Assembly: GCA_965649825.1 (NCBI GenBank)
Contig: OZ287706.1
Coordinates: 744,001 to 808,000 of the forward strand
From: Penicillus capitatus
Taxonomy: Eukaryota > Plantae > Chlorophyta
Length of the DNA: 64,000 nucleotides
Direction: 5' to 3'
Shown here: piece by piece, positions 1,045 through 52,815 of the stretch
Layout: every line of letters begins with the position of its first letter
Numbering within the stretch: the first letter of the stretch is position 1
Made by a program: the position numbers and the translations under genes
Notes under the pieces: model-generated
Databases searched by the model: none
What the model was told of the DNA's origin: nothing
Seen by the model: only the letters and a program-made list of their open reading frames with translations

Positions 1045-2637
1045 ATGGCGCGTCGTTCGGCGAAGTTTTCGGGGAGTACTCTCGTCACTGTGTGGATGTT
1101 GGCTTATTTCAATGCCGTTTGTCTTGCGAGCAAAGGTCGTAGGCTCGACGTTCTCTTCGCTGCACTCCTAACGGTGTGTATTCCTGTAGAATTGAACACA
1201 TCTACAGAGAGCGGAAATTCGACGGCAGAGACGAATGCATCCGGACTGGCTCCTGAATTTCTTCGCCCTTTCGCTACGCCAGAGGCTTCTGAAGCGCCAT
1301 GTAGCGGAGAGAACTGTCGCAAAGTACGTCGAACGGGATAAGACATCGACGGGCGGCACGCTGCGATGGATGGCTTGTCGATGCCTTCATCGCAGGCGAC
1401 GTCAACAGGAGCAGACTTGATGCGCTTTTTTGCGCAGGGCAAAGGCAAAGGCCGCGTCGTACCAGCGACAAAGCATGATGATGACACGTCGTCGACGGGA
1501 CTTTCAGAATACCCGTTGGCTACGCCGTCGAGAGATGCCGAAGGCCCGACAGAAGAATGTTTCCTCAGTCTTTATCCGTATCTGAAACGCCTCCAACACT
1601 TGAAGAAAAAGGCTTTAGCCCACGTGCGTTTCAAACCCTGAAAAAATGAGTGCGTCATGTGTGAGATGTAGGAGATGGTTCAATCCATGAAAGAGAAGAA
1701 CATTGTCAAAGCCATTCTGCTTCCCCTCTACGGTTTGGGCGTGAATGCAGCACACAATGACGGGGACATCGAAGAGGATCCCATGGGCTTAAACTCAACC
1801 TTACTGCATTGGACAGCTTATCACGATGCCATTGAACATACAGAGGTGAGACATCGATCGATCACTGACAGCAGGAGATCGATGGCAGTGTGGACGCAGA
1901 TGTTGATTCTGAAGGGGGCGGATGTGAATTCAGAGAACAGTAGGTTGTTTTCCCCTCTTCATGTCGCAGCGTGGTATGGACGCACCGCTATCGCAGAGGT
2001 AAACAAGCGACCTCATCACACGATACGGCTCGATCGATCGATGCGGTAGACATGACTCTATCGAGTGGGTCATGGCCACAACGCCGTACGGTCTTGTTAA
2101 GGGGTCGGTTTTGATTGTCCATTTTTTGTGAGCGCACACAGTGGCGTGTCCATTTCCTTGAGCTCTATTCAGTTTTGTGCTTCTGCTTGGAATCTAGATC
2201 TTACTTCTCGCGGGAACAAATGCCAATTCAGCGGCTAAACATTCATGGACACCACTGTACGTTGCTGCACGCGAGGGTCATCTCGACGTCGTCAAAGTGA
2301 TCTCGGCGTTACGGATCTCATCCCATGCTGAATCGCATCCTTGTAGATATTGTTAATTTCTGGGAGCGATCCGAACAGTCGAAGCTTAGTTGGATGGACG
2401 CCACTGCATGTGGCAGCATGGAAGGGTTACATCGATATTTGTGAAGTGCGATGACCCATCCACTTACCCATCATCAATAGCCATCCTTGTACGCTCTAGG
2501 TACTTGTGGATGCCGGGGCGATGGTGAATATGAAGGCGTATAGTGGAGAACTCCCAGTCAATCATATCTGCAGAAGTTTTCAGTCCTCATGCTCAGACAG
2601 AACGCAAAACGCCCTCAAGGAGCTCCTTACCCCATAG
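1045..2637 (+). CDS. Signal-peptide-bearing ankyrin-repeat protein 1 (spliced)
   Basis: Hydrophobic N-terminus (LVTVWMLAYFNAVCLA). ANK repeats TLLHWTAYHD, SPLHVAAWYG, TPLYVAAREG, TPLHVAAWKG are joined by GT-AG introns. Ends HICRSFQSSC...LKELLTP-TAG at 2635-2637. Confidence 0.85.
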
Positions 2638-2960
2638 GAGATGAAATCTCACTATCATTATGACTCGAGTTTTTACTTCTTTTGTTTTGGGTCAGTGAAA
2701 TTAAGACGGTCCCGTCCGTCGAGGATCGATGACAACGCATTACGCCCATGGTGGCAGACATCGCAAATGAAGCTGCATTCCTCATTGTTTGTATGTACGC
2801 ACGTACTTACGTATTCTGTCAGAATTCTTGTGATGACACTGACTTTATTTCAAAACGTCTCTTTATTGGTTAAGGCCCTTTACTTACCATACGGCATAAC
2901 GGTCGAGTCTTTCGGACGCGCTCTTCTCTTTTCTACCTGTTTGTCTCTTCAGCTGTTCCT

Positions 2961-4475
2961 ATGGTTCTGCACGTCGTCGTTGTTCTTATTGCCAGTCATG
3001 CGACGTTGTCCCTTGGAGAGGGGTTTGGTGTCTCTCACAGCACGGTGAAGTTACGCGGTACGCAACGGACGAACGGTTCTCACTCGTGTAACGAATGCTA
3101 TTGTCTTAACAGAGAGCGCGCACAGTTTGTCCTCCTGGCAGCTTGCCATGGAATCCGCCAGAGACATTGTCAAGGTGAGACGTCAGGCGATAGTCGTCGA
3201 AATATCTGCCTGTCCATTGCTCGATGGTACCCTTCACGGATTCTGGCATGTCGCAGAGCATCCCGTGCCATGATAAGAAGAATTCAGAAATTGCAGATCG
3301 CGACGCATATCTTGTTCGTATCTATGGCATTGTATGACAGCATCCATCCAGCATCGATTGCTGGTAGAAAATGGTCTATGCCCTCCGAGCGGACGATGTC
3401 GCGACGGTCACGGAGATTCTCGCTGAAGGAATGGACGCCAATGGGACTTATGTGAACTCAACGATTCACGGGAGACCATTGACTGAGGGATCGACGCTGT
3501 TGCACTGGGCAGCCGTCTATGGCGCTGCTGAGTGCATTCCGGTACGATCACAATCTGCCGAAGCCATCCTCCATCGCCGAAACGCACGATCGCTGCTAGG
3601 TGCTTCTGGATCATGGTGCTGAGATCGACACCTTAACCGACACGCATTTCACACCACTGCACGCGGCGTCACAGAGTGGGCATCTAACAGCCGTGAAAGT
3701 GCGAATCATCTCCTATGGCTCTTTTATTGGTATCGTACGCCGTGGCAGATTCTTGTGCTCAATGACGCCGTTGTCGATGCCTTGAGTACGACAGGGAATA
3801 CGCCTCTTCACGAAGCAGCGAACCGTGGCTACGCATCGATTGTGGAGGTATCGAAAGGACACACGCCTTCCCCTATATCCAATACCCGTTTGGCAGTTTC
3901 TCCTAGAAGCAGGAGCGAAAGTGAACAGGACGAATGACCATGGGAACTCGGCTCTCGAACTTGCAGCGCAATCGGGGCATCTCATCGTCGTCGAAGTGCG
4001 TTTCTTCCAAAACCGCCCAATTCCTGTCTCACTCTTTACAGCAGATGCTCATCGCCAATGAGGCCGATGTAGATCATCAGGACGTTTTCGGATTCACTCC
4101 CCTGCACATGGCAGCCATCAAAGGATTTACGACCATCGTGGAAGTGAGCTTCTCTTGAATACCGTCTTCCGGTATAAACGAGCTGCGCAGGTGCTTGTGT
4201 CGGCCGGAGCGGATCTCGAAATCAAGAATGATGATAGACAAACGCCACTGCACTGTGCGTCGTCTTACGGTCACTTGGATGCTGTTAAGGTGTGCGGCTG
4301 CTTGATTCTGCGGAGATTGGATGAGGTTTTGTTAAAGGTACTCGTAAAGGCTGGTGCTAACAGATCTGCAGACACGGAGGCAGGAATGACGCCTTTTGAT
4401 ATCATATGTGAAGATGCGGCGCCCGAATGCAATTGGAAAACCGAGAAGGCTCTCGGGAAACTGTTGGCTGTTTAA
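2961..4475 (+). CDS. Signal-peptide-bearing ankyrin-repeat protein 2 (spliced, about 6 repeats)
   Basis: MVLHVVVVLIASHATLSLG signal-like start. Five internal 99-nt exons each encode one 33-aa ANK unit (TPLHAAS, TPLHEAA, SALELAA, TPLHMAA, TPLHCAS). C-cap DIICEDAAPEC...LGKLLAV-TAA. Confidence 0.88.
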
Positions 4476-5024
4476 GAACCGTTCGCGATTTTGAATGATC
4501 TTCTCTCGGTATCGGGTGGTCGAATGTTTCCTAACCTATAACACCCGACCGAAAAATGCTTATTCTTAGATCAAGACCAAACCATTTAGTTTCTTTGCAT
4601 GGGCAATGAACTGATGACCCATTCAGATTTCAAGTCTGTAAGAATAGATCTTGTGTTGTTGCCTTTGCTAGAAAGGAATCGGCAAACGATCGAGACTTCG
4701 ATGTCGGATCGCAAGGTGTATGCGGCAACATGGCTATCGGCTGATGAAGGCGCCGAGGCAATCGACGAACATCGATCGGGAGATTCGGCCACGATCGACG
4801 AGACCGAAAAATTCATTCCCTTACTCCGTCGTAGCTTGCACTTTACAAATGCGTGCAAAATCGATACACTGACGCCAATCTGACCGCGATGAAAGATATA
4901 AGAAAGCGGAAGACGTGGGGTGGATGCATGGAAAGAGGTGGTCTGAATCGGTTTGTGTGACGTCGATGAATGGATCTTAGCGCATTCGATCTGTACGATC
5001 GCGGTTCTGCGAAAGGACGACGCC

Positions 5025-5782
5025 ATGATGCTCACGTATTGTTGTGCGATAAGGCATGGACTTCATCGTAGTTGGCCCGTTTCGCATGGCCGGCGATCGA
5101 TCGACCTTTCCGCTTTATCGTGGCATATCGAGAGAGGAACGATCGAGGACGAGACGGAGCTATCGAAGTCTCTTCAAACGGAGAGGTAGCGCTCGAGGGA
5201 CTCACTCCCTCGCCACGAGGAGCTCTTGGTTACTCACCTTTCTAATCGGCGTTATAATTAGAATGAACCCCTTGGGCATCGCCGCCGAACGGTTCTCTGT
5301 TGCAAAGACGGCCGAGGGAGAGATCTTGGGATTCGGTCAAATCGAGGTCTTCGCTGCCCCGCCCTACAGCGAAGTGCGGTCTATGCTTGTCAAAAAAGAA
5401 TTTCGGTGAGAATGTGCCTTTACATGGTGTTACATTTCATCGCCAACGCGTCTGCTAGAGGACAAGGTATTGGCAAGTCGATCTTGGAAAATCTGCTCGA
5501 TAGACCGCAAGTTCAGTCGCCTGTGATCTTGACGACAGTGACAGAGTCGAAAGGATTCTACTTGAAATACGGATTCGAAGAGATCAGATCATTCGACGGC
5601 ATTCCACTGTGCGTATCGAGGACAGACTCTGCGAGGGTGCCGGTGACTATGTTTTACATATTAGGAGAATGATAGTGGAGTGGCTTCTTGGGGTGGTTGT
5701 TGCTCGATTGGTCATAAACCAAGGATGTCTACTGATGCGAAAAGACGATATCGGAACGAAAAGCATTGCCGATGAACAATAG
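5025..5782 (+). CDS. GNAT-family N-acetyltransferase (probably organellar)
   Basis: Spliced ERMNPLG...FGQI, acetyl-CoA motif A (EFR|GQGIGKSIL), FYLKYGF, C-terminal VEWLLGVVVARL. Three GT-AG introns. Confidence 0.8.
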
Positions 5783-6463
5783 CTCGTGTTTTGTTACCAT
5801 CGATGGACAGAATGCACGACAGACCTTGCCGTTTTTGTCGCGTAGAAATCGCAAATAAGCCCATCCGTGATGTCGATCGTTCTCAAAAGAGTATAGAGAA
5901 ATCGATCGCGTCGGAGACGACGATGATTCGGACAGTCGACAACGAATTGTGTCAAATCGTCGATAGATCCGTCATCGCGTCACGTGACTTATACTAATCA
6001 ATTCTCTCGTATCACCTTACTCGCATGACCGCTCCATCTGAAACTCTCTCTATAGTGCTTGTAAAGAGTGAGTCAGCGAGAGACGCATGCTCCTTTCTCT
6101 GATTTCTACACTATGCGATCGATCATACACGATCGATCACATCGCTAGCAGTCATGTAACGCGACCGATCGATGATCGATTCGTTTTTGCACACTGTTTT
6201 AGTGTTCCATCCGTCCCAGGGACGATTGGAAATGGCAGACATGAAATGATCGTCGTTGTCGTTAACGAATGGCACTGTCTTTACACTTTCTTTCTCTTGA
6301 GTCAAATCGTTCTCTGCACCGCACCCTCGAAGTTTCGGAAAGTACACTCCTATGGCGACTATCTCTTCATTAAGAAGCAGATAATGATCGCACGGATCGC
6401 CTTGTGTTATGATACACCTGATGGAGACATCATCGATTCGACACATGCATCTCGATGTCGATG

Positions 6464-7882
6464 CTATGCCAAACCGACTGCTCCGTAACGACTATTTTCG
6501 TAATCCCCATTGAAAGACCCGATGTTCATACTCTGCGTCTGTCGTCGCATCACAGGAATCCGCGGAATGTTCCTCGTATCTGTCGCTTCGCCTTTAATAT
6601 CAATAGACGCACGAAAAGTCGTATCGGGCAGATCGACGATGCGTTTGACGGGTCTGGGCGGCGGACGTGGTTCTTCGATCTCTTCACTATCGGGTATCAA
6701 CGGATGACTTGCCTCGGAGTTACTCGAGGTCAGATGTCGAGAGCGCCAAAAATGTCGGAAAAGGGGAGAGACACATTCCCAGAGCGAGGACGGTGATGGG
6801 ACGGTCGAAATGGTCGACTCGGCAAGATTGGCTTCTACGATGCCGTCTCGTGAGACGACAGTACGTCGCGCCTTCTTGATCTCGACCTCTGTCGGCTGCT
6901 TTCCATCCAGACTGACATCGTCCCTCCACTCCAGCAAACAGGCCAAGACATGCGGTCGATAACTGGCCGAGGCGCAGATGGGATTGCCGGCGAGAGAGAC
7001 GAGACGCAGCGATGAGAGCGTCTTCAATTTCACAATCTCGCGGAGAGACGACAGCACGTTCCATCGCAGATCCGCCTCTTCAAGGCGCTCCAAATTCTGT
7101 ATGCCTTCGAGACAGCGAATGCCGTTGCTTTGAAGAAAGAGACGCCGAACCCCTGTACACAGCGGAATCTCACCCAAACTCGCCAGTCGATTAAAACTGA
7201 GATCCAAAGCGACGAGATGCGTCAAGTGACGCAGATGCTCCGCCTGGAGAATGTCATTCCGACTGAAATCCAGCGACGTCACGTTGTTGGCCAAACTGAG
7301 TGAGGCATCGATTTCTTTGAGATTATTATAGATGCAGGAGAAGTGTCTCAGTTTTGGCCATCGACGTTGCGCCTCGCTGCCGTCCTCTTCGGTCACTTGA
7401 GTGGGCTCCAGTAAATGCCAGAGACGTTCGATGGAGTCTTGGCAGATAATGCACTCGACCGTCGGACGAATCGTCTCCACTCCAGAGGGACAGACAGATG
7501 ACAAATTGCATCCGCGAATCTCAACGGTCATGAGCGATTTGAAGGGTGAGAAGTTGATTGGGGTCGGGTCTCGAACGTCTTGAGCTGCGGAGTAGAGCTT
7601 GAGGTACTTAACGAGGGAGCAAAAGTTTTGCACTTTTTCCATGCGCAAAAAATCGGTCAGGTCCGCAACGGCGCCTGCAAGGAAACGTATCGGATTGGAT
7701 GTCTTGACACGCTGGAGTTGGCGGAGTCCTTCGAGACGTGAGGCGAGACACTCCAGAGCTCTTGGTTGCAGTTTGAAGGCGGAGGAGCTCGAGAGCAGCT
7801 CATCTCCGTGTGCATTAATGAATAGAATCAACTGACGCAGAAACTCTTCTGCCGATGGATGCACTGATGGACGGGAACTCAT
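6464..7882 (-). CDS. LRR protein, STK11IP/LIP1-like
   Basis: Intronless ORF with N-terminal FKLQPRALECLASRL...RDPTPINFSPFKSLMTVEIRGCNLS, matching the plant LIP1/STK11IP type from memory, plus LRRs (LDFSRNDI, LDLSFNRL, LFLQSNGI, LRWNVL, LAGNPI). The 3' end may continue by splicing. Confidence 0.8.
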   Translation of the reverse strand: MSSRPSVHPSAEEFLRQLILFINAHGDELLSSSSAFKLQPRALECLASRLEGLRQLQRVKTSNPIRFLAGAVADLTDFLRMEKVQNFCSLVKYLKLYSAAQDVRDPTPINFSPFKSLMTVEIRGCNLSSVCPSGVETIRPTVECIICQDSIERLWHLLEPTQVTEEDGSEAQRRWPKLRHFSCIYNNLKEIDASLSLANNVTSLDFSRNDILQAEHLRHLTHLVALDLSFNRLASLGEIPLCTGVRRLFLQSNGIRCLEGIQNLERLEEADLRWNVLSSLREIVKLKTLSSLRLVSLAGNPICASASYRPHVLACLLEWRDDVSLDGKQPTEVEIKKARRTVVSRDGIVEANLAESTISTVPSPSSLWECVSPLFRHFWRSRHLTSSNSEASHPLIPDSEEIEEPRPPPRPVKRIVDLPDTTFRASIDIKGEATDTRNIPRIPVMRRQTQSMNIGSFNGDYENSRYGAVGLA

Positions 7883-8607: not shown

Positions 8608-11600
8608 ATGAATTCTTTACGAGCGTTTCGAATGTTCTTCCTCTTTCTTCTATTCGTATCGGCCAGTACGTGTGTTCCTGTGCCTCCGTGTCTCTGTGCT
8701 GGACCCGAGGGCATTGTGTTGATAGTATTGGCTCGGCCTGTTGCATCCAAACACTGCGGTCATGCGCACGTTCTTGCGAATCTCACTTTGATCAACCGCC
8801 AACACAACGATCACAAGGGAGCGACACATTTTGATCGTCAACAGGTCAAGGAATACGAAAGCTGGGAAACGGAGAACGCTTTTAGCTGCGTTTCGACAGA
8901 GGAGTGGAGAGGGTGGCGATGTTGGATACGCGGCCGACGGAATGCGCATACGCGTCAATTACCAACTCGAAGAGCAGGATGTTGCAATCAGAGAGTTTCT
9001 GATGCGCAAACTCGTGCCCGCTGCGATTTCGATCGTCGAATCGACGATTCAGGTATCGATTCTCGATCAGGAATCGTCGAAAAGATCGAACTTCTTAGGT
9101 CAAACGTCCGATTGAAGGCAATCTGCAGCTGCCTCGATACTGCATTCTTTACTACAGGAGTTACCCAGAAGAGTGTTTAGAAATGCAGCCAAGTGGGAAT
9201 CGGGATAACGAAGAGTGGGCATTCTGTGGCCATGCCGTTCACAACGATGCCTTTTTCGAATCCTACAGAACCTGCACCACCGTGACACCCAACAACCCCA
9301 CACAAGGATTCACATGCGAGACACGCGCCACGCCGGGAGTCGAGGAGAGTGATTTCGTTCTCTACGTCACGGCAGTCGAAAGCTCTTACTGCGAATCCGC
9401 TGCCGCCTATGCGATGTATTGCTCTTTGGATCGCGAGACTAATCGTCCTCTCGCCGGATCCATAAACTTCTGCCCGTCCAGTTTGTCGTCCGCACTGAGC
9501 GATTTTGAACACCAAGTCGAAGTGGCAGTTCATGAGCTGCTGCACACACTGGTTATTCACTTGTTGCCCTTGAGCAAGGGTGACATGCGCCCTAGGTCTT
9601 TTCGGAATCGCTGTTCGACAAATTTATCGATCAAGATGGCGAAACGATTCCGATCGATCAAGTGCTTCGAACGGAAGTAGACGGACAGCGTATCGTAAAG
9701 AAGATCATTACTCCAAAAGTAAAAGAGCAAGCACGGGAGCATTACGGATGTCCGACGTTGGACGGCGCCGAGCTCGAAGATGAAGGTGGCCCAGGAACTG
9801 CCGGAAGTCACTGGGAGACCCGAACCCTAAAAGTGCGCCCCGCGTTCAACGTCGACTTGATCATCGATCATCGATCAGGGAGAATTGATGGACGGTATGT
9901 CTGGCGTGAACATCCCGTCAGATCGCCATGCCTTATCTCCCTTTACCCTTGCCTTGCTCGAAGACAGCGGGTGGTACTCAGTCAACTGGAATGCCACGGT
10001 GACCGATCGAACACGATGGTGCTGATGCACACGGTATGCGATTCTGGTCTAGGGCTCGTTGTCGTGGGGTAGAAACGCAGGCTGTTCGTTTGCTGAAGAT
10101 CCATGCGACGTTTACATCGACAAACACAGAGATCAACGGTGGTTCTGCTCGATACCTGGAAGCAGTGCCTGCACAGCAGATCTTCACGCTTATGGACGAT
10201 GTCGGTCGGACATTCTCCTCAATGGCTGCCATGTCGTAGCGCCCTATTCGAACGTCGACTGCAAACAGTCAACCCATGCACCCAGTACACACTAGTATGA
10301 TAAGACGCGAATCCGATCAATTACCGCGTAGGCATGTCTGTGGACTGGGGTTCGCGATTTGGACCTTCATCTTACTGTCTAGCTATAGAGACGCCGATGA
10401 CGCATAGCGTTGCCTACCCTGGCGGATCGATCCAGACGACACGATCTGCCAGAAGCGGCGATTGTTTCGCAGTGGAATGCGAGAATGGAGTATATCACAT
10501 TGACGTGCTTGGTCAATCTATTGCTTGCGATGACAGGGAGCTGACCGTATGGCTTCCCGACGTGTTTCCTAACTTCGTCTCGGGAGGCATTAAGTGTCCA
10601 CGACAAGAGCCCGTTTGTGTCTCGTCTGGATGTCCGGCCGATTGCTCTGGTCACGGATGGTGCAGAGAAGGCACATGCTTCTGTCACTTGGGATACACAG
10701 GTGAAATCGCTCGCTCTCGGTCATGCGTTGGCATCTGAGTTGTGTACTAGGGATCGACTGTTCGATACGGTTGTGTAATCGTCAATCGAGTTACTGCCTA
10801 TGTGCACTCGACGGCGATCGAGATTACGGAACGTGCATGCCTGGTACGGATGGTATGGAACAGATCATGAAATCCGGTGATCTCCTGTCCGAAACGACGA
10901 TGAAGTCGATCAAGGCACGCTTCGCATTCTGATCGACGACGTTTACTTAATCTTTCCGGATCAGGTCGAATTCAATATCGAATCGGCGGCGATCGAACAG
11001 ATCGAAACGTCTGTGCCGCAAGCACTGAGCAGCATCCTGGCAAACACAACTCTGGAAGATATTTACGTTCTCGGCATTCGTTGGGAGGCAGATACGTCGA
11101 CGGATCACAGTTCGAGCTTGTCGCAACAAACGGTCCCTCCAAGACAATATTGCCATCGACAACAGAACAGTCGGTACCTCTAGGTGACTGTCAGCATTTC
11201 AACAGCGAACAGTGTCGATCTGAAAGCGAAACTGACCGACGCAGCTATCTCTGGCGATCTGGCCGACGCTTTTAGCAGCAAAGGCATTCACTACATCGAA
11301 GGATCGATCGAAGTTTTCGACGCCGAAGAGGCACCGGGTAAGATCGCTTATGTATTGCTCGTTCTCTTACTTTCTAGAACAGATTCTGAAGAACTGCCGA
11401 AGGAAGACAGTGATGGTGTCGCTCTTGAAGTGATGCTTGGTGTCGGCGGCTTCGGCACAGTGATTTTTGTGATCATCGTCCTTTGCCGAATCCATCGAGT
11501 GCGGCAAAGACTCAGAAGAGTCCCAACAACTTATGACCGTACCGATCAGGCTGAAGTAATTCACAGAAGTCACACCTTTTCGATTGATTTCTCGCCTCGT

Positions 11601-11936: not shown

Positions 11937-14215
11937 CTAGACATCGAGTGCGAGGACATCTATAAGAATCATATCTGTGAGCGACACGTCTTCTCCAATG
12001 CCCGACGACGGTAAGCATATCCACGGATTGCCTTGGCAGTTGATCTCCGCAAAGATATTCTGCACGAATGGCTTCTTTAGCTTGTCGTCTCGATACCAGA
12101 CAGTGGCAGAGGTGATGCTGCTCATCTCTCGGCGGCACAGATACATACAGGCATTCAGCAGGTCCATACATGCCTCTCGAAATGAACCTGCGGTCGGTAT
12201 CCGTTCAGACTGCTCCAAAATTGGAAAGTGGATCTGCAAGATGACGCAATACGCGTCTTGAAAGAGTAGACGGGCATACGGCTTTGCATCAGCGCCAGAT
12301 GTCATCTCCACCCGCATGCGCCGAACAGTCTCTACCAGCTGTGATCCATTCCACTCATGCACGTGCCCGATGCTGCAGCCCTTAATGTCAGGCAGATCCT
12401 TTAGGCCTCTGAATGATGCGTGTCGTTCGGCCGTTTCTCTGTTGTTCATCATAATCGGTTGAATTTCGATGTTTGCATTCTTCGGCAATGTCGGGACGAC
12501 GACATACGATACGATGGGATCGATGCGGAAATCGAAGACAGGTGGTTTAAGATAGGAGTCCACATTTGGATCCGTTGGCGTCTCATTCATGACGTCCACA
12601 TCTGAATGCGCATCTGGATGCTCCGACGACCAGCATCTGTTGATGAGAGTCCGCAGCGCTTCTCTCTCATGTTCTGGCAGACCCGAAAGAAAACTCGCGG
12701 CTAGGTAGATGGTAGCCTTGATGGTCGAGCGCATGGCATCTGCCCCGACTGCGATCGCGACAGCCTGGCAATGTTGCAAAGCGAGCTGCACTTCCTGTTG
12801 CCATCCGAGATTGCCAAAAGTCATCGACGAAGGGACCAAACCCAGCTGGCCGGCAACGAAGGACAGGTGTCGCAGTGAGGTCGCTTGACTGTATGGACCG
12901 ATGCAGCATGGCGCCCAATGAGAGATGCTCTGCACATGAAGCACTCTTCTAGAAACACTGGCGGCTCTTGACTTATGAAGAGCTAGAATGCTAAGGGTAC
13001 AGGGGGATGTCTGAGACAGCTGAATGCATGCTCGTGAGGGAGGATCTCTATGCGGAAAGAATGCACAGTAGACTCGATTGGCAACCGCAAAGAGTTTCAT
13101 ATCGTTGAGATAGAGCTGCACGAACACGGCATCTTCCAGCGCCATCTGTTCATCCGCAAGTGCCGACTGTAACTTCTTTAACAACCAGAGCAAACAGAGC
13201 TCTGTTCCCTCTGCGCCGCCTGGCGTCTCTGCTCCGTCGATCATCGACGCGGATAGATGCAAGAAGCATTTGGTCTTCTGGACCGAAAGCATAACAGCCT
13301 CCTTTGGGTGAAGTGCAGCGGACAGTGGTATCCGTGGATGTGCATTGCCGAGTTCGAAATCGAATGGCACCAGATGCAGGCTGCCTGGATGCACGATATC
13401 AGCTGGCGTTTTGATTTCTACGTGAAAGGATTGAATGTCGAGGATACCGACGGGCGAGATATCTCCTCCTTCTTTGTCTTTGAGGACATTGCTCTCGTCG
13501 ATCACAATTCGACCGAATTTGAAGAGAGGGCAGTCCAGTACCAGTGTCTCATATTCGCCCCCTTCGCCGCAAATGTGGCATCCGTATTGTTCGTAGAGCG
13601 CCACGAGATGCGGCTTCATGGAATGCAGATCTTTGCCCAAGTGCTTTTCCGGAATCAATCCCAGTCCTGCGACCTTGATGATGATGGCGTCGATGCCCGA
13701 TCCGATCATATCGTCCATAAGCATCAACTGAGATCGTTTCCACAAGGGAGCCAATGAGATCAATTCCAGTCGCTCACAGATGCTCTCCACTCGGAGTCGT
13801 TGATAGTCCGAAGCGATGGCACCGGAGCAGACCGCTTCCAAGTCTGGATGTCGCGATTTGACGTAACTGACGAGTCGATAGAGGTCCTCCACTTCATCGT
13901 TAGGGGAGGAGGTATAGGACAGTTCATGAGAAACGGACTCTCCACGTGTCGTCACACGGTACATTGGCATTCCTAATGTCTTCCATGGAATCGAGAGGAG
14001 TGAAAGCGATGGATTGAGTTACCCGTGCACTGGGCGAAGCTTTCGACAACGTTGTGGCCGACGGTTTGAAACATCCAGCTATCGAGGTCGTCTTTCTGTA
14101 GTGTCGGGTCGGGGGCGAGGTTGCCAAGAGCGATAACATCGTGTCCCTGCCGCTCGCAGAGCATCATGCAGAAGCAGGAGTCTTTTCCGCCGCTTATCAA
14201 CGCCAAGACCTTCAT
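11937..14215 (-). CDS. DPH6: Diphthine--ammonia ligase with RidA/YjgF domains
   Basis: MKVLALISGGKDS, DSWMFQTVGH, GAIASDYQRLRVE, CGEGGEYETLVLDCPLF, then RidA-like HVQSISHWAPCCIGPYSQA. One intron near the 5' end. Confidence 0.95.
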
Positions 14216-38107: not shown

Positions 38108-39388
38108 CAAAAGGAAACCCGAATAACAACGCGTGCAGAACGACCAGACATTTCTGCATGAAGCATTGTTCCCCATGGATAAAGATGTTAGTGCCGATCA
38201 GGCCTAACTATCTTGATGGTTAAGGTATAGAGGGCTTCAGGCAGCTAGCTACTGTGTAGCAAAGCTATCATCATCTTCGATGTTTACTGGCACATTCAGG
38301 TCGCCTGCAATTTCATGGACAACTTCTGACCACTGACGCGCGATAGAGCACAGACTTTTTTCGATCCGCCTGACTACATTTGTCGCTAACCCAAACCCGA
38401 AAACGAAACTTAAGAAAGTGTCAGTCGCACGTCCTCAGATTACCGGATCCTCCTCACAGAATGATGTGACTTTCCGCTTTCCATCAATCCGTTGCGCGAT
38501 GCCGTGCGTCGGACGATACCGTTTTGTTTCCATTTATCCACCTTTAGTGTATATCCAGCAGGTCGAAGGTGCAAAAGAACGCACACTTAAGAAATTGAAC
38601 CTATCGCTTTGCTCAAGATGTATACAGACCTCAGTTCTCCACCCTCTCGCCCGTTCCTTAGCGAAGAGACAGGATTCGACATAGTAAGTGCTTCTTACCT
38701 ACCTATGTCTTAATGAAGAGACCAATCGTCCTCTGACAAGTATCCCCGCCAGATCTCGCTCTGAATTGCACATGCCGTAAAATTTGTTTTGCAGATGCTC
38801 AACCGTCATGCCTTCCTCTCGTTATAATCAGGAAATGAAGACGATAGAATCCCTCTCTCTCTCAGCGACCGGTAGGTTCACCAATGGTTATATAACAGAG
38901 CAATTCACAGCATCTCTACAGCCACATCTAGACCATCCGATATCGATCTAATGTGCAATACCACTAACAGGTTGCTTTGCCACTGCACCCGATTGGCACT
39001 GGCAAGGAGGACAAGGACACTCAGTAGTGGTCGCCCGTCGCCGTTTCCATACATCATGAACGCTGTCTGTGTCAATCGCATTTCTGGTTCTCTTTGCCCA
39101 GCGCGCCCTTCAGATCTCTGATTGAAGGATAGGTTTGATTGAGGGGCATCTGTTGCCAATTAGGAGATATCGTCACGAATTCCACTAGAAACAACGCCAG
39201 GATAAAAAGCGGCATGTGTACGAGAGAAATCTCCAGTGCACCACCAATCTCTTCAGAGCGGTCAGTGTCAAGTTAGCAGATCGTTGATCCGCGTGATGCG
39301 ACGTGGAGCAAGCGAGCGGCTCTTAAGCGCCGTCTCGTATCTTTTCGCCGCTCTTCCCTTTTTCCTCCCTACCCTCTCGGTTCTGTCC

Positions 39389-40661
39389 ATGGCGTCAATG
39401 CGTCTTCCTCGTCTTTCCCCGTTTCTTTGCGGTCTCATACTGACAACGATCGCTCTGCATACCCTCGCAGAGCCAACGTGTACTGTCGACCGATATCTCA
39501 ACGAATGCGGTAGACCACGTCTCGCTGTTGCCCGAGACTTAACAGCGATGCCATACCAGGATACCTTGGCATTCAACAAGCCGAATGCGAGAGTAGAGGT
39601 TGCTGCTGGAATCCGAATGTTCCACAGGGACAACCTTGGTGCTTTAACAAGAATGGAGGCTACACGTACTTCGCGCCAGAGTTGCCCCGTATCGACTGCG
39701 GTAAGCACGCTGAACATCTTTTCTTGATGTGAGGAATACCGTATGCAGGTCACTTTGGCATTTTCCGCTCGGAATGCGAGACTCGTGGATGTATGTATTC
39801 GCCCGCCTTTGGACAATCCTGGTGCTTCTTCCCCAACACCAACACCGATCCAGACTCGTGTCCTTACCGTCGCGTCGAGTGCGGTAAGCGGGCGGCAAAA
39901 CAGCGCCGCCTTTCTAACCGTCCCCTCCTTCCTGCCCCGCAGGTTTTGTTGGAATCGGTCAGGACGAGTGTGAAAGCCGTGGGTGTTGTTGGTATCCTTT
40001 GGGACAGGGATCTGCAGAGCCCTGGTGTTTCCACAGCATCCACTCCGAACCTGCCACTGTCGCTGAGGCATCACCCGAGGAACCAACAGAGACGACAACA
40101 CCCCCCGAGGAACCAACAGTAGAGACGACAACACCCCCCGAGGAACCAACAGCAGAGACGACACCACCACCAGAGGAATCAGAAGAAGAGATGCCCGTCG
40201 TGGAGTTGCCAGCCGAGCTCGCAGGAATGATGGTTCCAGTAGAGGAGGGAGAAGGCTTGGCTATTCAAACCCAACCGGAAGAAAGCCCCACAGCAGTAGC
40301 GGGAGAACAGACAGGAGAGCCGGCAACGGAGGCATCAGCTGAAGCGCCTGCCATGGCCGAGAGCATGACTGTGCTGCCGAATGAGCATCTGCAGGACGAG
40401 ACCTCTCAAGCCATGGAACTCAATTTCGACATCGATACGTTCGAGAAGAACATTCCGAAGTCGGCTTACTACCAAAACCATCAGGATGGTTTTCGCGTAC
40501 CCTGTGATACGGAAGCACTAACAGAACACGAGTGTCTGGCGATTGTGGAATGCCATTGGGTTCCGGAAGTGACGCCTGGATTCGGTGCTTGTATGAAGCG
40601 CCTTTCCGATCCAGGACGTCGCAGCATGGGAAAATTCTTCAAACCCAGAACCATTTACTAG
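39389..40661 (+). CDS. Secreted protein with three trefoil (P-type) domains, mucin-like PEEPT repeats and a C-terminal Cys-rich domain
   Basis: Signal peptide. After splicing: ECG|YLGIQQAECESRGCCW..PWCF, DCG|HFGIFRSECETRGCMY..SWCF, ECG|FVGIGQDECESRGCCW..PWCF. Confidence 0.85.
40073..40177 (+). repeat. Coding tandem repeat, 30-33 bp units (PEEPT[VA]ETTT)
   Basis: cccgaggaaccaacag(ta/ca)gagacgaca repeated 3 times plus a partial copy. Confidence 0.9.
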
Positions 40662-41829
40662 ACCTCCAGCGATTGCAGAACATGAAGATTGTGCCCTAAG
40701 GCAACAGAATCCAAATCTTCCACGCAATATTTGCCACCAATGTTCAATTCATCTTTTTTTCTTGCTCAGCGGTAGGTCCCTGGCCCGTGGGTCGATAAAC
40801 CGCCGCGATGAATCGATCTTAATATTCATGGCAATAGACACCCAGAATCTATGTAACTGACAACCCGATATTTGCCCGATTTCGCGTCTCATACGTTTTT
40901 TCCTGCCATGCAGGTCACCCCTCGGTCGACGTGTGGGGTTTTCACTGCGGACGACAACAAATCGAGATTCGTCGATCGAGCCGTTTTCTTCACACGTGTG
41001 TAACAGCGCGTCGTCAGATGGCAACGATGAGAACCGTTTGCATCTGTCGCATCCTTGCATTCAGAAAAGGAGCGTGTGATATCCGAACAGACGCCGAATG
41101 CACGGTCTTCATCAATCCCCCTTCACCACGATTACATCCGAATAACTCCACAGAAAAGACGGTACAGCTCCTATCTGCCGTGCTTGCGATCTAGACAGTC
41201 ATCAAAAGTAACATCTGTGTCGTTCGTGACGCATGGACGAAGGAAGGGCTTTCCTTATCTGCCCTCCATCTCCGATATCAGCTGTCGTGAGACCGAATGT
41301 GCCCTGCGGTCTCTTTTTCAGATTAAGCTGAATACTGACGTCCCGTCGACGGGCCACATGGTCGCAGAAGGAGGAGGCGCCATTCAACCTGTCGCCATCG
41401 AAGACCACAGATCGTCCTGTCTATTCCCTTTCGAGGAACTTGCACTCCCTTCCCGAACGCCACAACGGCTGCACGACTTCTGCCAAGTGATGTTGGTAAA
41501 CGACCGCCTCAGAATTGCGTCAGCGGCTTCCCTGATACCTCTGCACTGCTGCAGTACAGAAAGATCATGCGGAAGGAAGAGATCGGGAGACTTAAGGACA
41601 TTAAGTCAGGTAACGTGAACATGCCTTGTTGAGTCGTCACCGGCACGCATCACAAACCGCTGTCGAGTCGAGCACGGACGGTTCACGCACCGCATTATCT
41701 CGCATTCAATAGAAAGCGAACGCGTTTCAACCAGTGCGCAGATCTTCGTCGGAGTTGTCCCTTTAATGAACTGCTTGGGGACTGGCAGGCACAACGAGCA
41801 CACTTTCTCACTCGCCGTTTTGTCGCGCT

Positions 41830-43185
41830 ATGTACCGAGTGGGAGACGTCATAGAGGGCGGATATTTCGTCCGAGAAGTCTTCCGAATTCGAGCAAACGG
41901 CGCCATTTGCCGAGTACGCCTGCTAAAGACATCAAAAAGCCCTCCCTGTTAGCTACAGGAGTTGTCTCCAGTGCACAAGATATGGAGATGGCAGCGATGT
42001 GACAATTGAATGTATATTCCTCAGAGCAATGGATCTTCCTGAAACTGCAGACTACTACGAGCAACGCAAAATGGCAGGCAACGGCTCATCCCTCCCTTTG
42101 CTCATGCATGCACACTGCAGGATATTCTCACGGGCAGTTCGCAGAATCGAGAACAGCGACCGGAATGGTTTGAGATCGAAGTCGACGGGAATAGAATCCT
42201 ACACATCATTCAAGTGTGACCGATGCGCTCATTCCTTTCTTCAGTGAACGGCGGCAGTCTACAGGACTGTTATCCGCAGATCGTTTGCCGGATTCTGCAC
42301 CTTACACCTCCTGAGAGGATCTGGTGCGTCCGTCACATCATGCGCGCATCGATCGACTGACCACGCTGTGCTCTCACGCAGCACGGACGTCGAAGTAAGG
42401 CCCGGGCCAGAGGATGCCCGACCGACCGTAAGGAGAGGTCAACGCTGTCTGGAGATCGACGTCCCTCCACCGTTTCGATATCGAAGTGCGTGCATCGCGT
42501 CTCGTCATTCCTGTAGATTGGCCTGTTCATGGTGGGTGTGTTGCTCGCCAGCCTTGCCCTTTCTCGTCATGCTCGTTCTTTGCATTTCCATCTTTCTGCT
42601 GGCGACAGGCCTCCTCGCTTTCTCTTCATACACTGCAATGCATAAAGTCATGGATGGAAGTACGGGATTCCCTGGCCGTCCGTGCAATGCGATGCGTTTC
42701 GTGTTTGGCAGGACACTACGTACTTAACTCTCTTCTTATTCTCATGTGGCTGTTTGTACTGCCTCTGCCTGCTCTGTTCGTCGCGATGCTGTCCGGCCGG
42801 CAGTTGTTGATCATCGCACCATGCACGTTCGAAGTCAGAAGGACGATCGGACGACCTCTGCGCTCATCCGCCGATGCACCTCCCACCTGCCATCTCTGGA
42901 AGCCATCCCGCATCGACAGAATGCTGCGCCGACAAGTCACAGGCAAAACGCGAGATCTGACGAAGGCAGAAGTAAGAACAATGCCGCTTCCCACGATCGA
43001 GACAGACATGTCCTGTGGTGCAGGTGAAGGCATCGACCTGTTGTGCCTCCACGGTTTCAATGTTAGTCTTAGCTGAAGTCCGCAGAGAATATCAACTGTT
43101 TCCACTTCTTTCGCTATCCGAGCAAGTGTGGCTCGCGAGGGAGATTTGTTCTTTCCTCGAGAGCATACCAAGAGGAGAACCGTGA
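41830..43185 (+). CDS. Degenerate kinase-N-lobe + TM + C-terminal PH-like domain protein, paralog A
   Basis: Exon-by-exon alignment to paralog B (YRVGDV..., same 34-aa exon 2, RPEWFE, CLEIDVPP, GRQLLI...FEVRRTIG, GKTRDL, EQVWLAREI). One exon junction near 42200-42260 is uncertain. Confidence 0.65.
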
Positions 43186-43699: not shown

Positions 43700-45155
43700 T
43701 CACAGATTCACTGGAGCATTCAGATTGATGCACTCCAGGATTAGGTTGACCTCATCGGCAATCCATTCTTGTTCTTCTATGGAAAGGAAAGGAAACACGC
43801 GCTGTCGCGTGATGCTTCCGCTCAAAACAATCGTGCTTATATTCATGCAGCGGTCCTGTCCTTGTTCCACCTGCGCCGCCCGTCGTGACCTATCTGTGGG
43901 ATAACGAGATTTATGCATCACCTCCGCCTTCTTTAGATCTTTCGTCTTGCTTGTTACTTGTGCCCTGAACCATCTATCGAAACAGGAAGTGTGCCATCCG
44001 TCGATGCGGTCGCAGAAACGGGATTTATGCCAAAAAGGCAGTCCCAGTGTCCTTCTCACTTCGAAGTCGCTGTAGCTGATCCTCAGATGCTGGCGACCGA
44101 AGAACATCGCACAGAAGACAAACGGCGAGAGAGTGACGACTGCCCAGAAGGGCGCCAAGAAGACAACGTGCCAACGCCCTCCTAAAAGAAGAGACATTCG
44201 ACGGCAGACAGGCGAGACGCAGAGGTGTCGACCGCGATCGGCGATGTGGTCGACGAGGAGACATGTTATGAACGAAAGGACACCGACAAACGCCAAGAAG
44301 ACGAGCGTCAAGAGACAGAGCGCAAGCAACCATGGACGACCTGACGGACACAGGTCAGACAAACCGACACCGAAACGCGTGATAGGACGGACTTAAGCGC
44401 GTCCACAGTGGCGGAACGTCGACTTCCAGAAAGCACTCGCCGTATCTTCGCACCGAAGACCATGCGTTCTGCGGTCCATGTCGTACTTCCTCGGCGATTC
44501 CGCACCTGCGAGAGCATGTAGAGGGAGGGGCATGTGGAGGCGTCGGGTGCACCTGGAAGGATGAACGATGGCGTGGCAGCAGGTGGAGCGCAGTTCAGAA
44601 ACGGAACGTCCCTGTTACGTACACCGTTTCTGTTTTTGTGGCCTCAGGGGTGAAGTGCAGTTACTGCGACGACTAGAAAGCGCTTGTTGTTTCCTTCCTG
44701 TGTCTCCAGCCATGGAGGCCTCTGCAGCCGACGATCGCTGTGCTCGGTCAACAGCTCCTTCAGAAACAGAATCCAGAGAATGAATGGCCTCGGCGAAGGC
44801 TGTACGTGCTTCGCCTTCTCGTAGACGCCCGGTGAGAACGGAGGCTGCGTCGAGCACAGAGACAGGCAGTCAAAGATCACTTCACATCCGTCGCGCAGAT
44901 TTGCACACTGCAACATAGCATGCGTGATAGTGTCGTCCCAGAAGATCGGTACGAAGACGCACGCGGCATACGGTCGTGCCTCGTGGAGTCAGTTGGACTT
45001 CCTCGATGAGGTACCGCTCAAAAACAACGTCGCCAACGCGGTACGCCGACGAGCAATTGTCTGCAACAGAGATGCGTCCGAGTATTGTAAGAGGTCACAC
45101 GGCAAGAGCCAGTTCGGCGCGGCCGTGGAGGAGGGACCTTACCAGCAGAGACCAT
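43700..45155 (-). CDS. Degenerate kinase-N-lobe + TM + C-terminal PH-like domain protein, paralog B
   Basis: YRVGDVVFERYLI, CLSL, FLVVA|GRSVSEL, FLEVDVPP, TM segments, APFW, FFGRQHLRI, SKTKDL, EQEWIADEV. All introns are GT-AG. Confidence 0.7.
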
Positions 45156-45971
45156 CCGGTTAGAAAAGGTCGTTTCACGAGTTCTTGGATTTCGTCGTCT
45201 ACAATGATCTACACGGTTTAAGTTAAGCGCCCAGGATTTCAGGTGTCTTTTCTGACACGCGGAAGGCCGCACCGCGACTCGCAATTATGCACAGTGTTCT
45301 CAGCTATTTGTGGCCGTTCGCTAAACGAGGCATGATATTACATCCAGGCATTCAGCTATCGATGGAACCCCGCAGAAATTGTCTTGTTGTGCCCACGCAA
45401 TTGTGGTCAGATACATGGCATGTATTCAAACGGCAAGGCCGCGCCTTTGCGCTTTGTCTCATCAGCGCACCATTATGATACCACAAACGTCAGAGCACAT
45501 GCCAAGCGGCTGTATCACTCGAACGACGGACGTTCCATGATGTCGTTCGCTGCTTAGAGCCAAAGGCTCGAGGCAAGTGGAGATTCACAAGACACCTCGA
45601 GACGGACAAGGCAATCCGAAATCAACTTCGAATGGAAAAAAAGCATTTGCAGGTTCTGCGTCATCGCGGATCGACGCTGCCGTAAGACAGATGCCGCGAC
45701 GAGTATTTAGAACGCGACGCCGAGTGCCGTCACCTCGGCCATCGTCTGTCGCGATGCGTCCAGACCGAACGATGCCATGCAAACCTGCAAGAAAAGTCAC
45801 GGGCGCACCTCTGTCTCTGCCATTCGGCTGCGCGAGCGCATCTCTCTAGGTAAGGTATCCTCCCATGGACGGATTGGGGATGGATCGTGTCCCATGGTGG
45901 GTCCGAGGGAGATGACTCATGTTGAATCATCGACGGCTCCTCTGCAAGTAGCTCCCTCTGTACCTCTTCGA

Positions 45972-47264
45972 ATGTTGTATGCGCGTTTGAGTCGTTCCGC
46001 TTTCATCGGTTCGCCTCTACCAACTCGACATCTCTTAACACGTCGAGTCGCCAGTCGTTGCGTCGCAGCAGTGGCGGAAATGGTCTCCACAGACGATCTC
46101 AAACAGTGCCACAAGGAGCTGATACCGCTCATACAGTCGAAGAACTGCAATCCGATTCTCGTGCGACTGGCCTGGCACGACTCCGGAACATACAACAAGG
46201 TACAGACGCCATATCATGAAGTGCAAGCGACGATGGCGTCGCAGGACATGGCGGACAGGTGGCCCGTTTGCGGCGGCGCGAATGGGAGCATTCGTTTCAA
46301 ACCCGAGATCGATCACGGTGCCAACGCCGGTGCGCTGTCCATCTCGTCGCCACCGTTGTCGAGCGATGTTGTTGGCATGAAGGTTTGGCGAATGCCTTGG
46401 CGTTGGTAGAGCCCATCAAACAGAAGTACCCAAATGTGTCTTACGCGGACATCTACCAGATGGCCTCCGCTGTGGCCATCGAGGTGAACGCTTTCCATCA
46501 GCACGAGATCTCTTCACCGTGTAACAGGTCGCTGGAGGACCGAAGATTCCGATGCGCTACGGTCGCACAGACGCCACGGGACCAGACGACTGCCCAGTCG
46601 AAGGAAACCTCCCAGGTGTGATAGGGAGACGTTAGCCTACATGTGGGATCGTTGTTCTGCAGCGGGTGGCGCGCCGTATCCTAAAGAGGCGAAGGGCCCG
46701 GCGGCGCATCTGCGCGATATCTTCTATCGCATGGGACTGACGGACCAGGACATCGTGGCTCTGTCAGGGGCACACACCATCGGACGCGCCTATCCAACAC
46801 GATCTGGATTCGGTACGGTGGGATCGTCGGCGGAGGACGGCGTTATCGGATGCGACTGGCAGGGAAAGAAAGGACGAAGTACACGGAGAAAGGCCCGGGT
46901 ACGGTCGGCGGCAGCTCGTGGACACCGGAGTGGCTCAAGTTCGACAACTCTTACTTTGTGGTGGGACACATCCGCCAGCTGTCTTTTCGCAGCTGTGCCC
47001 TCTCGCTGTAGGAAGTGAAGGAGAAACGCGATGCCGATTTGCTGGTGCTCGAGACTGATGCATGCCTCTTCGAAGACGACGCATTCAAGTCCGCACATCA
47101 CGGATTATGCATGACCCGAGTGCGATCTTTCTGTGCACAGGCCCTATGCTGAGAAGTACGCCGCCGATCAGGCTGCGTTCTTCGCGGACTACGCCGCCTC
47201 GCATGCGAAGCTCTCGGAGCTCGGCGTCAAGTGGGTCGAAGGCGGTCCTGTGACACTGGAGTGA
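45972..47264 (+). CDS. APX: Plastid ascorbate peroxidase
   Basis: [56 protein letters not shown]; transit peptide. Confidence 0.96.
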
Positions 47265-52404: not shown

Positions 52405-52815
52405 ATGGTGCGCACAAAGCAGACGGCTCGCAAGTCGACTGGCGGCAAGGCGCCGCGCAAGCAGCTGGCGATGAAGGCCGCTCGCAAGTCTGCCCCCGTG
52501 AAAGGTGGCGTCAAGAAGCCGCACCGCTTCCGCCCAGGAACGGTGGCGCTGAGAGAGATTCGCCGATACCAGAAGTCCACAGAACTGCTCATCCGGAGAG
52601 CGCCGTTCCAGAGGATTGTCCGTGAGATCGCGCAAGACTTCAAGTCCGACCTTCGTTATCAAGCCAGTGCCGTTATGGCTTTGCAAGAAGCGGCAGAAGC
52701 TTTCCTCGTCGGCCTGTTCGAGGATTCGAATTTGTGTGCCATCCATGCGAAACGCGTCACCGTGATGCCAAAGGACCTGAAACTCGCAAGACGCATCCGC
52801 GGAGATGCGAGCTAA
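52405..52815 (+). CDS. H3: Divergent histone H3 variant (intronless)
   Basis: 136-aa H3 with about 18 substitutions relative to the canonical plant H3.1 sequence. Confidence 0.97.

Follow-up and report, generated by a model that had tools for sequence, protein, structure and literature searches.

The 64-kb stretch of Penicillus capitatus DNA described here (contig OZ287706.1, positions 744,001 to 808,000; hereafter the window, with positions counted from its first letter) carries at 39389-40661 a split gene for a protein with three P-type trefoil domains. The protein has a signal-peptide-like N-terminus, followed by the trefoil domains, an acidic repetitive stalk and a C-terminal module with four cysteines. 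Taken as a whole, the gene is best explained as encoding a secreted three-trefoil protein that would act as a multivalent glycan-binding cross-linker, a reading to which we assign a probability of about 0.55. The parts of this reading differ in strength. The gene, its domains and the secretion of its product are highly probable. A generic role as a glycan-binding cross-linker, argued by analogy with characterized trefoil proteins, is an even call, and a specific role in plugging wounds, which a first-pass annotation of this DNA had put forward, is improbable.

Gene structure and domains

The reading frame lies on the + strand, with its ATG at 39389 and a TAG stop at 40659-40661. Read without splicing from 39389, the DNA meets stops in every frame. 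Removal of three introns, found exactly where the first-pass annotation had placed them, restores an open reading frame (ORF) of 1116 nt that encodes 371 amino acids. All three introns are of the GT-AG type and in phase 1, and each cuts after a TGC codon for cysteine and the first base of the following glycine codon. The exons and introns are as follows.

39389-39509 (+): exon 1, with the ATG, the signal-peptide-like segment (39389-39469, residues 1-27), trefoil domain 1 from CysI to CysII and the first base of the Gly codon
39510-39559 (+): intron 1, 50 nt, GTAGAC...CCAG, phase 1, between CysII and Gly of domain 1; 50, 51, 50 and 52 nt in the four gene copies
39560-39700 (+): exon 2, 141 nt, class 1-1, with the rest of trefoil domain 1, a linker and domain 2 up to CysII
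39701-39748 (+): intron 2, 48 nt, GTAAGC...GCAG, phase 1, between CysII and Gly of domain 2; 48, 47, 48 and 47 nt in the four copies
39749-39883 (+): exon 3, 135 nt, class 1-1, with the rest of domain 2 (a four-cysteine variant), a linker and domain 3 up to CysII
39884-39942 (+): intron 3, 59 nt, GTAAGC...GCAG, with a CTAAC motif resembling a branch point, phase 1, between CysII and Gly of domain 3; 54, 54 and 53 nt in the relatives
39943-40661 (+): exon 4, with the rest of trefoil domain 3 (to 40031), the stalk (40041-40415), the C-terminal module (40416-40658) and the TAG

Splicing was judged by comparative evidence, using the DNA of four gene copies, namely the window gene and three full-length copies from related genomes, in loci named L001 (block with the gene at 4762-7194), L002 (block at 4736-7168) and L003 (block at 5190-6992). 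These three copies have all three GT-AG introns at identical Cys|Gly sites. Once spliced, the four copies give intact ORFs of 349-396 amino acids in which every cysteine is kept, 20 of them in the mature protein. Gaps in the alignment of the four copies fall in 12 of the 160 intron columns and in none of the 495 exon columns. The ratio of nonsynonymous to synonymous substitutions (dN/dS) over the trefoil region is 0.12-0.49, below 1 throughout. Two proteins predicted by a bacterial-type gene caller, P0001 and P0002, run through intron 3, which is there 54 nt long, in frame and free of stops. In the window gene this intron is 59 nt long, 5-6 nt longer than in the other copies, and reading through it would break the frame. 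Equally tiny introns (47-51 nt) occur in other genes of the window; the kinesin gene, for instance, has one of about 47 nt, and RuvBL2 one of about 51 nt. On this comparison, the gene model is established short of cDNA.

Two other readings of the locus were rejected. Conservation does not extend to an in-frame ATG upstream, at 39296: the relatives have stop codons in its frame, and the start was accordingly placed at 39389. An antisense ORF at 39268-40170 (-), of 300 amino acids, has no Pfam match, whereas the sense strand has the conserved spliced ORF, and it is probably a by-product of the composition of that strand.

The conservation of intron 3 equals that of the exons, its mean pairwise identity being 89.7% versus 76-81% for introns 1 and 2, and it holds a G+C-rich inverted repeat (GGCGGC...GCCGCC) in addition to the CTAAC motif. 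A further conserved block lies upstream of the start codon and is a possible promoter element of the bZIP type, as judged from its sequence.

39301-39306 (+): ACGTGG, resembling the core of a G-box or abscisic acid-responsive element (ABRE), about 85-90 nt upstream of the start codon; a gcgACGTGGc/a block is present in 4 of 4 copies while the surroundings diverge

The spliced protein matches the Pfam family PF00088 (Trefoil) with 121.7 bits and an E-value of 1.1e-35. Scored singly, domains 1, 2 and 3 reach 49.5, 44.3 and 46.2 bits, and with a gathering cutoff of 21 bits a chance match is therefore excluded. The domains were also compared with the trefoil signature CysI-x(6-10)-CysII-x9-CysIII-x4-CysIV-CysV-x(9-12)-CysVI and its Arg, Gly and Trp landmarks. 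The set of six cysteines is complete in domains 1 and 3, with spacings of 8/9/4/0/11 and 6/9/4/0/12 residues, respectively. Domain 2 has only four cysteines, CysI and CysV being both gone. The disulfides of the trefoil fold connect cysteines 1-5, 2-4 and 3-6, and the joint loss of CysI and CysV is what the 1-5 bond would lead one to expect. Across the 12 domain copies of the four genes, the residues Arg, CG, G, C, C, P and WCF are unchanged. The tryptophan that precedes CysVI is present in all three domains of all four copies (W67, W112 and W160 in the window gene). The residue before CysII is always acidic; it is E39, D86 and E131 here, and Asp in domain 1 of L001 and L003. With cysteine numbers of 6, 4, 6 and 4 in the three domains and the C-terminal module, the mature protein has an even set of 20, and thus no odd cysteine is left for covalent dimerization.

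A search with phmmer against the sequences of the Protein Data Bank (PDB) returned porcine spasmolytic polypeptide (pSP)/TFF2, TFF1, TFF3 and the trefoils contained in GAA and MGAM. The trefoil region (residues 28-169) was modelled with AlphaFold2 from an alignment of 15 sequences; the mean predicted local distance difference test score (pLDDT) is 68.2 overall and 74-82 in the domain cores. When this model was compared with the PDB using Foldseek, 31 of 31 matches were trefoil domains. The model superposes on TFF1 (PDB-id 6v1d) with a root mean square deviation of 1.5 Å over 42 columns and a target-normalised TM-score of 0.70, and on TFF3 (6v1c) with 1.0 Å over 34 columns; the match to pSP (1pos) has an E-value of 1.2e-4. 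Judged from sequence and predicted fold together, the three trefoil domains of the first-pass annotation are genuine P-type trefoils.

The N-terminus resembles a signal peptide, with Arg5 and Arg8, a hydrophobic core at residues 9-23 (hydrophobicity score KD15 of 2.06) and then TLA|EP. The core is kept in all four copies (KD15 2.06-2.19), with small residues at positions -3 and -1 (T-L-A|E). It is the sole such segment: no second hydrophobic segment or membrane anchor was found in the protein, and the C-terminus is hydrophilic. By these heuristics, the protein looks secreted by the classical pathway with a cleavable-looking signal peptide, in agreement with the secreted character proposed earlier.

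The stalk, residues 166-290, has 125 amino acids, of which 24% are Glu, 16% Pro, 14% Thr, 13% Ala and 6% Ser, for a net charge of -31. No N-glycosylation sequon is present in the protein. The C-terminal module (residues 291-371, with its tail) is the most conserved part, with 91% mean column identity among the four copies. The distinct elements of these two regions are the following.

40074-40191 (+): tandem repeat of 33 nt, 3.7 copies, Tandem Repeats Finder score 159, 87% matches; it encodes the PEEPT-x-ETTTP units of the stalk
40503-40592 (+): four-cysteine core of the C-terminal module, C320, C330, C336 and C349
40593-40658 (+): basic tail MKRLSDPGRRSMGKFFKP(R/K)TIY, net charge +6, with a dibasic RR; identical in 4 of 4 copies except for one R/K exchange

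The repeat unit and its copy number vary between the gene copies, whose proteins have 349-396 residues. The 33-nt repeat and the composition bear out the Pro/Glu/Thr-rich repeat stalk of the first-pass annotation, but its mucin-like character is weak, since Ser and Thr make up 20% and the match to the Pfam Mucin-like profile reaches 13.2 bits against a cutoff of 28.7; just a core of 43 amino acids attains 56% Thr+Ser+Pro. The four cysteines of the final module are present as previously noted, but they probably do not define a module of a separate kind. The core scores 16.7 bits against PF00088 (E 0.0067), which is under the cutoff, and aligns with the algal trefoil profile in hhalign with an E-value of 0.002 and a probability of 14%, its cysteines falling in the register of CysII, CysIII, CysIV and CysVI. 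It may thus be a degenerate fourth trefoil. Searches of the PDB with the module, as a single sequence and as a profile, gave matches at chance level only.

Relatives and history of the trefoil array

A word-indexed search with the full protein returned just three proteins, all of them read-through ORFs in two metagenome assemblies from ENA whose contigs measure about 1 Mb. Other taxa were reached by a profile search with the trefoil region and by an exhaustive HMMER search. Within the 64-kb window, tblastn found no other trefoil gene; the sole extra match, at 41814-41882, is at chance level (E 0.29).

The closest relatives form a small family, each genome having two copies or more, and the gene was copied together with its surroundings.

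38567-41031 (+): duplicated unit of about 2.4 kb, made of the gene with about 800 nt upstream and about 370 nt downstream, copied as a block in related genomes

Aligned to the window with blastn, L001 and L002 match only over 38567/38599-41029/41031, while the flanks of L003 align as well, and L003 is therefore its positional orthologue there. L003 and L001, found together on one contig, resemble each other more than they resemble the window gene or L002; for the window gene, the most similar copy is L002, whose contig also has a diphthine-ammonia ligase 98% identical to that of the window. Copies within a genome are thus more alike than positional orthologues, a pattern which suggests gene conversion or independent duplication in each lineage.

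The surroundings of the paralogues differ from those of the window gene. A few kb downstream of the trefoil paralogue, a PLL-type beta-propeller lectin domain (PF26607) is encoded by genes in L001, at 8785-9816 (-) and 12006-12831 (-), and in L002, at 12716-12798 (-); no such gene was seen in the window. In addition, positions 1-599 of L002, about 5 kb upstream of the trefoil gene, hold the end of a second, different gene with a weak Trefoil match and KIEEKPEPSPYE repeats, which is cut by the end of the locus.

The profile of the trefoil region found an orthologue in Caulerpa lentillifera, g6199.t1 (EukProt EP00210 P006489), with 57% identity over 96% of the region and an E-value of 7e-44. Like the window protein, it has a signal peptide and three trefoils in like order, and the linkers CFNKNGGY.Y and CFFPNTN.D are kept. 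The identity is 78% in domain 1 and 51% in each of domains 2 and 3. In contrast, the Caulerpa protein has only 190 amino acids, it lacks both the acidic stalk and the C-terminal four-cysteine module, and its domain 2 retains CysI and CysV and so has all six cysteines. Since the domains are colinear and the linkers are kept, the triple array is older than the split of these lineages. A more divergent relative, L004 (Logan SRR20820735), has 33-41% identity and introns of 44-54 nt at the Cys|Gly site in each of at least four domains; six domains in all have such an intron that can be identified. This contig of 3.4 kb (positions 1-3430, 49% G+C) is nearly filled by trefoil domains in four called ORFs, and could be either one long multi-trefoil gene or a tandem array.

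The recurrence of the intron at an identical internal site in every domain, with exons 2 and 3 of class 1-1, leads to the conclusion that the array grew by duplication of an exon-plus-intron unit. The comparison of sequences indicates that this phase 1-1 exon unit was duplicated before the lineages of Caulerpa and of the window gene split. The exon-unit duplication assumed in the first-pass annotation is thereby upheld, the same site being used in L004. In animals, a TFF domain corresponds to a single class 1-1 exon (PMC7350206). This rule does not hold for the algal gene, in which exons 2 and 3 are of class 1-1 yet offset from the domain borders.

The exhaustive HMMER search covered 1.84 billion representative proteins and gave 704 matches at E <= 0.001. 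The top named matches are multi-trefoil proteins of animals, namely of Clytia (a hydrozoan), of snakes ('integumentary mucin C.1-like'), a newt, Oculina (a coral) and Styela (a tunicate). A match in the fungus Piromyces is a GH31 glycosidase with trefoil and CBM26 modules. The profile search added a protein of the dinoflagellate Amphidinium carterae (P0142), with Thr-rich linkers, and many small secreted proteins with two or three trefoils (P0129, P0132-P0139; ENA contigs of 600-950 nt), some of them on more than 100 contigs. On these sequences, stand-alone trefoil proteins appear to be common in protists and barely described.

The TFF literature consulted describes trefoil domains only in vertebrate proteins, among them glycosidases, peptides of the mucosa and proteins of frog skin and of the zona pellucida (PMC7350206). 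Trefoil domains outside animals are already known from the fungus Piromyces, the prasinophyte Cymbomonas and a choanoflagellate glucoamylase (PMC5741210), and Cyanidiales red algae have secreted Kelch+Trefoil families with Thr/Pro/Ala linkers (PMC9812998). With these cases, the dinoflagellate protein and a Caulerpa orthologue that was already in a public protein set, the novelty implied by the first-pass annotation was set too high. No literature that links trefoil domains with Bryopsidales was found; the matches concerned beta-trefoil (ricin-type) lectins, which have a different fold.

Several known systems resemble the algal protein in part. The vertebrate peptides TFF1, TFF2/pSP and TFF3 share with it the domain family, the predicted fold, the Trp before CysVI and an acidic or amide residue before CysII. 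However, they have 60-106 amino acids, one or two domains and extra cysteines for dimerization or ring closure, and their ligand is GlcNAc-alpha-1,4-Gal of MUC6-type glycans. With its 371 amino acids, three domains, stalk and extra module and no unpaired cysteine, the algal protein is therefore not an orthologue of the TFF peptides; it also differs in having Glu in two clefts and a four-cysteine domain 2. Closer in architecture is the frog protein FIM-A.1, which is also secreted, has about 400 amino acids and combines several trefoils with a repetitive O-glycosylated Pro/Thr-rich region, and for which lectin-type networking has been proposed (PMC7177656). The FIM repeats are Thr-rich Pro/Thr/Ser (PTS) regions, in contrast to the Glu-dominated algal stalk, and the animal domains are encoded by one class 1-1 exon each (PMC7350206), whereas the algal gene has an intron inside each domain. 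The likeness is architectural, and shared ancestry of the whole architecture is without support. The Cyanidiales Kelch+Trefoil proteins, compared by their description only, are likewise algal and multi-copy, with a signal peptide and a Thr/Pro/Ala-rich linker to a second module (PMC9812998), but in them a single trefoil is joined to a kelch (galactose-oxidase-like) domain, and they are subtelomeric and belong to another phylum. The trefoil glycosidases, which comprise vertebrate GAA, MGAM and SI, the Piromyces GH31 enzyme and the Cymbomonas and choanoflagellate glucoamylases, share the domain and the handling of carbohydrates (PMC5741210); in these the trefoil is accessory to a catalytic domain, which the algal protein lacks. 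An analogy in function may lie with BPL-1 (Bryohealin, F-type), BPL-2 and BPL-3/4 (H-type) of Bryopsis, which are 'animal-like' lectins of siphonous green algae, secreted or found in the sap, that bring about the aggregation of extruded cytoplasm (bioRxiv 10.1101/2023.11.22.568388). Their folds are unrelated to the trefoil, trefoils were outside the scope of that survey, and nothing ties the trefoil gene to wounding.

Genomic neighbourhood and host

The window consists of ordinary nuclear DNA of a eukaryote, with genes that include those for a kinesin, COG7, a WLM protein, a ubiquitin-like protein, a proteasome subunit, a FAN1-like protein, a peroxidase, histone H3, a tubulin-tyrosine ligase, an FrhB-type protein, RuvBL (RuvBL2) and MsrB. 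Scans of the window for Rfam families and tRNAs found nothing. The ORF at 11937-13970 (-), of 677 amino acids, encodes a diphthine-ammonia ligase, and all its named matches are from Viridiplantae. The best are those of Ostreobium quekettii, Bryopsis sp. KO-2023 and Caulerpa lentillifera, with 395-401 bits, the next reaching 334 bits or less; identity to these best named relatives is only 37-43%. The green-algal host of the first-pass annotation is borne out by this gene, which places the host probably in or near the siphonous Bryopsidales. An assignment to a low-GC outlier chromosome of Ostreococcus, considered on account of the G+C step and the tiny introns, was rejected, since the ligase is without a close named relative and its best named matches are from Bryopsidales.

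In the first 44 kb or so of the window, the G+C content lies at about 49-54%; beyond a step near 44000-46000 it is 55-60% as far as 62 kb, and over the final 2 kb it falls to 47%. Both sides of the step hold ordinary nuclear genes. The histone H3 gene, at 52408-52815 (+), starts with MVRTKQ, differs near residues 20-34 and ends with RGDAS. Canonical H3 starts with MARTKQ, and on sequence the gene may encode a variant H3.

Function and alternative explanations

The proposed mechanism would run as follows. The protein would enter the secretory pathway and work outside the plasma membrane, in the wall, the mucilage or the vacuolar sap. Each trefoil would form one shallow sugar cleft between the Trp before CysVI (W67, W112 or W160) and the acidic residue before CysII (E39, D86 or E131). 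With three clefts per chain, the disulfide-stabilised, multivalent protein could cross-link polysaccharides or glycoproteins. The stalk, its Pro, Thr and Ser probably hydroxylated or carrying O-glycans, would be a highly anionic spacer of extended shape, and the whole would amount to a short 'mini-mucin' akin to frog FIM-A.1. For the sugar cleft, the model follows TFF1 and TFF3, which hold the sugar by an Asn/Asp before CysII and the Trp before CysVI (PMC7221086). We also counted in favour of a lectin the joining of trefoil modules to sugar-processing enzymes in animals, fungi and a prasinophyte (PMC5741210). The vertebrate epitope GlcNAc-alpha-1,4-Gal is unlikely to be the ligand. Lectin activity itself, and the parts in wound plugging, adhesion or microbe binding that the first-pass annotation suggested, are hypothetical; a wound plug is conceivable in a siphonous alga.

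Several observations weigh against this cross-linker reading. Where the TFFs contact their sugar through Asn/Asp, domains 1 and 3 show Glu, and domain 2 is one disulfide short, so that binding competence is uncertain. The stalk is dominated by Glu and its content of Ser+Thr is atypical for the PTS regions of mucins. The reading gives no account of what the C-terminal module and its tail do, although conservation is highest there. The confidence of the trefoil model is moderate only, and a model of the full-length protein, from an alignment of four sequences, has a pLDDT of 35.5 and is unusable. Finally, the signal peptide was called by a heuristic, and the in-frame ATG at 39296, if used, would put 31 extra residues before the signal sequence.

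The strong conservation of the C-terminal module would be explained if the protein were a structural glycoprotein of the wall or matrix, a chimera resembling the hydroxyproline-rich glycoproteins, in which the glycosylated (Hyp/Thr) acidic stalk and the C-terminal module are the functional parts and the trefoils serve as protease-resistant, disulfide-locked knobs or as protein contacts. The stalk, which is Pro-rich, repetitive and fast in changing its length, is like those of wall glycoproteins, and the Glu found in domains 1 and 3 in place of the Asn/Asp of the TFFs points the same way. On the other hand, the trefoil region is under purifying selection, with an invariant Trp and a cleft residue that is always acidic, and the Caulerpa orthologue has three trefoils without stalk or C-terminal module, which makes the trefoils the conserved core of the family. 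We consider a purely structural role unlikely, though to be taken seriously. Binding could also be directed outwards, the trefoils recognizing bacterial or grazer glycans, in agglutination, management of endophytes or anti-fouling, instead of the alga's own polymers. The paralogues in L001 and L002 adjoin genes with PLL-type lectin domains, the fast change of the stalk and the likeness of copies within a genome fit surface or defence gene families, and Bryopsidales are known to use animal-like F-type and H-type lectins (bioRxiv 10.1101/2023.11.22.568388). However, gene adjacency is weak evidence in a eukaryote, and the dN/dS values below 1 throughout give no sign of diversifying selection in the trefoils; such a role in defence or towards the microbiome is rather doubtful.

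The origin and the integrity of the gene bear on the cross-linker reading as well. The best scores of the exhaustive search belong to animal multi-trefoil proteins and the related contigs derive from metagenome assemblies, as might be seen if the gene were a contaminant or had recently been transferred from a cnidarian or another host. Against this stand its position within 64 kb of ordinary eukaryotic genes, of which the neighbour that was searched, the diphthine-ammonia ligase, has green-plant and green-algal relatives only, its tiny introns like those of neighbouring genes, its synteny in a related genome, the colinear Caulerpa orthologue and the introns inside the domains, contrary to the one-exon-per-domain rule of animal TFFs (PMC7350206). 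A foreign or recently acquired sequence is thus very improbable, while an ancient transfer of a trefoil gene is possible. That the locus is a pseudogene, or is not spliced as described, is hardly credible. The two cysteines missing from domain 2 might speak for decay, but they are disulfide partners, and the ORF, the splice sites and the 20 mature cysteines are kept in four copies, with alignment gaps confined to introns and dN/dS below 1.

Of the more specific forms of the cross-linker reading, the most far-reaching is that siphonous green algae run a trefoil and 'mini-mucin' system of their own, in which the multivalent glycoprotein would cross-link sulfated polysaccharides of the wall or sap into a gel, on injury or at the cell surface. 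We regard this as a long shot. If true, it would be a functional parallel to the TFF-mucin repair system of animals, the combination of a trefoil with a glycosylated repeat would predate animals or have arisen twice, and in the C-terminal module and tail, which are invariant, one would have a new element for anchoring or processing. In practical terms, small disulfide-locked glycan binders from seaweeds are of interest as reagents, and the value of the present protein is modest until its binding or expression is known. For the biology of these algae, the gene provides a clean stand-alone secreted multi-trefoil protein in a green alga, in a lineage where this domain was undescribed. It adds a candidate lectin family to the siphonous green algae, whose lectins of wounding and aggregation already have animal-like folds, and its recurring intra-domain intron offers a marker for the history of the array and for tests of the ancestry of algal and animal trefoils.

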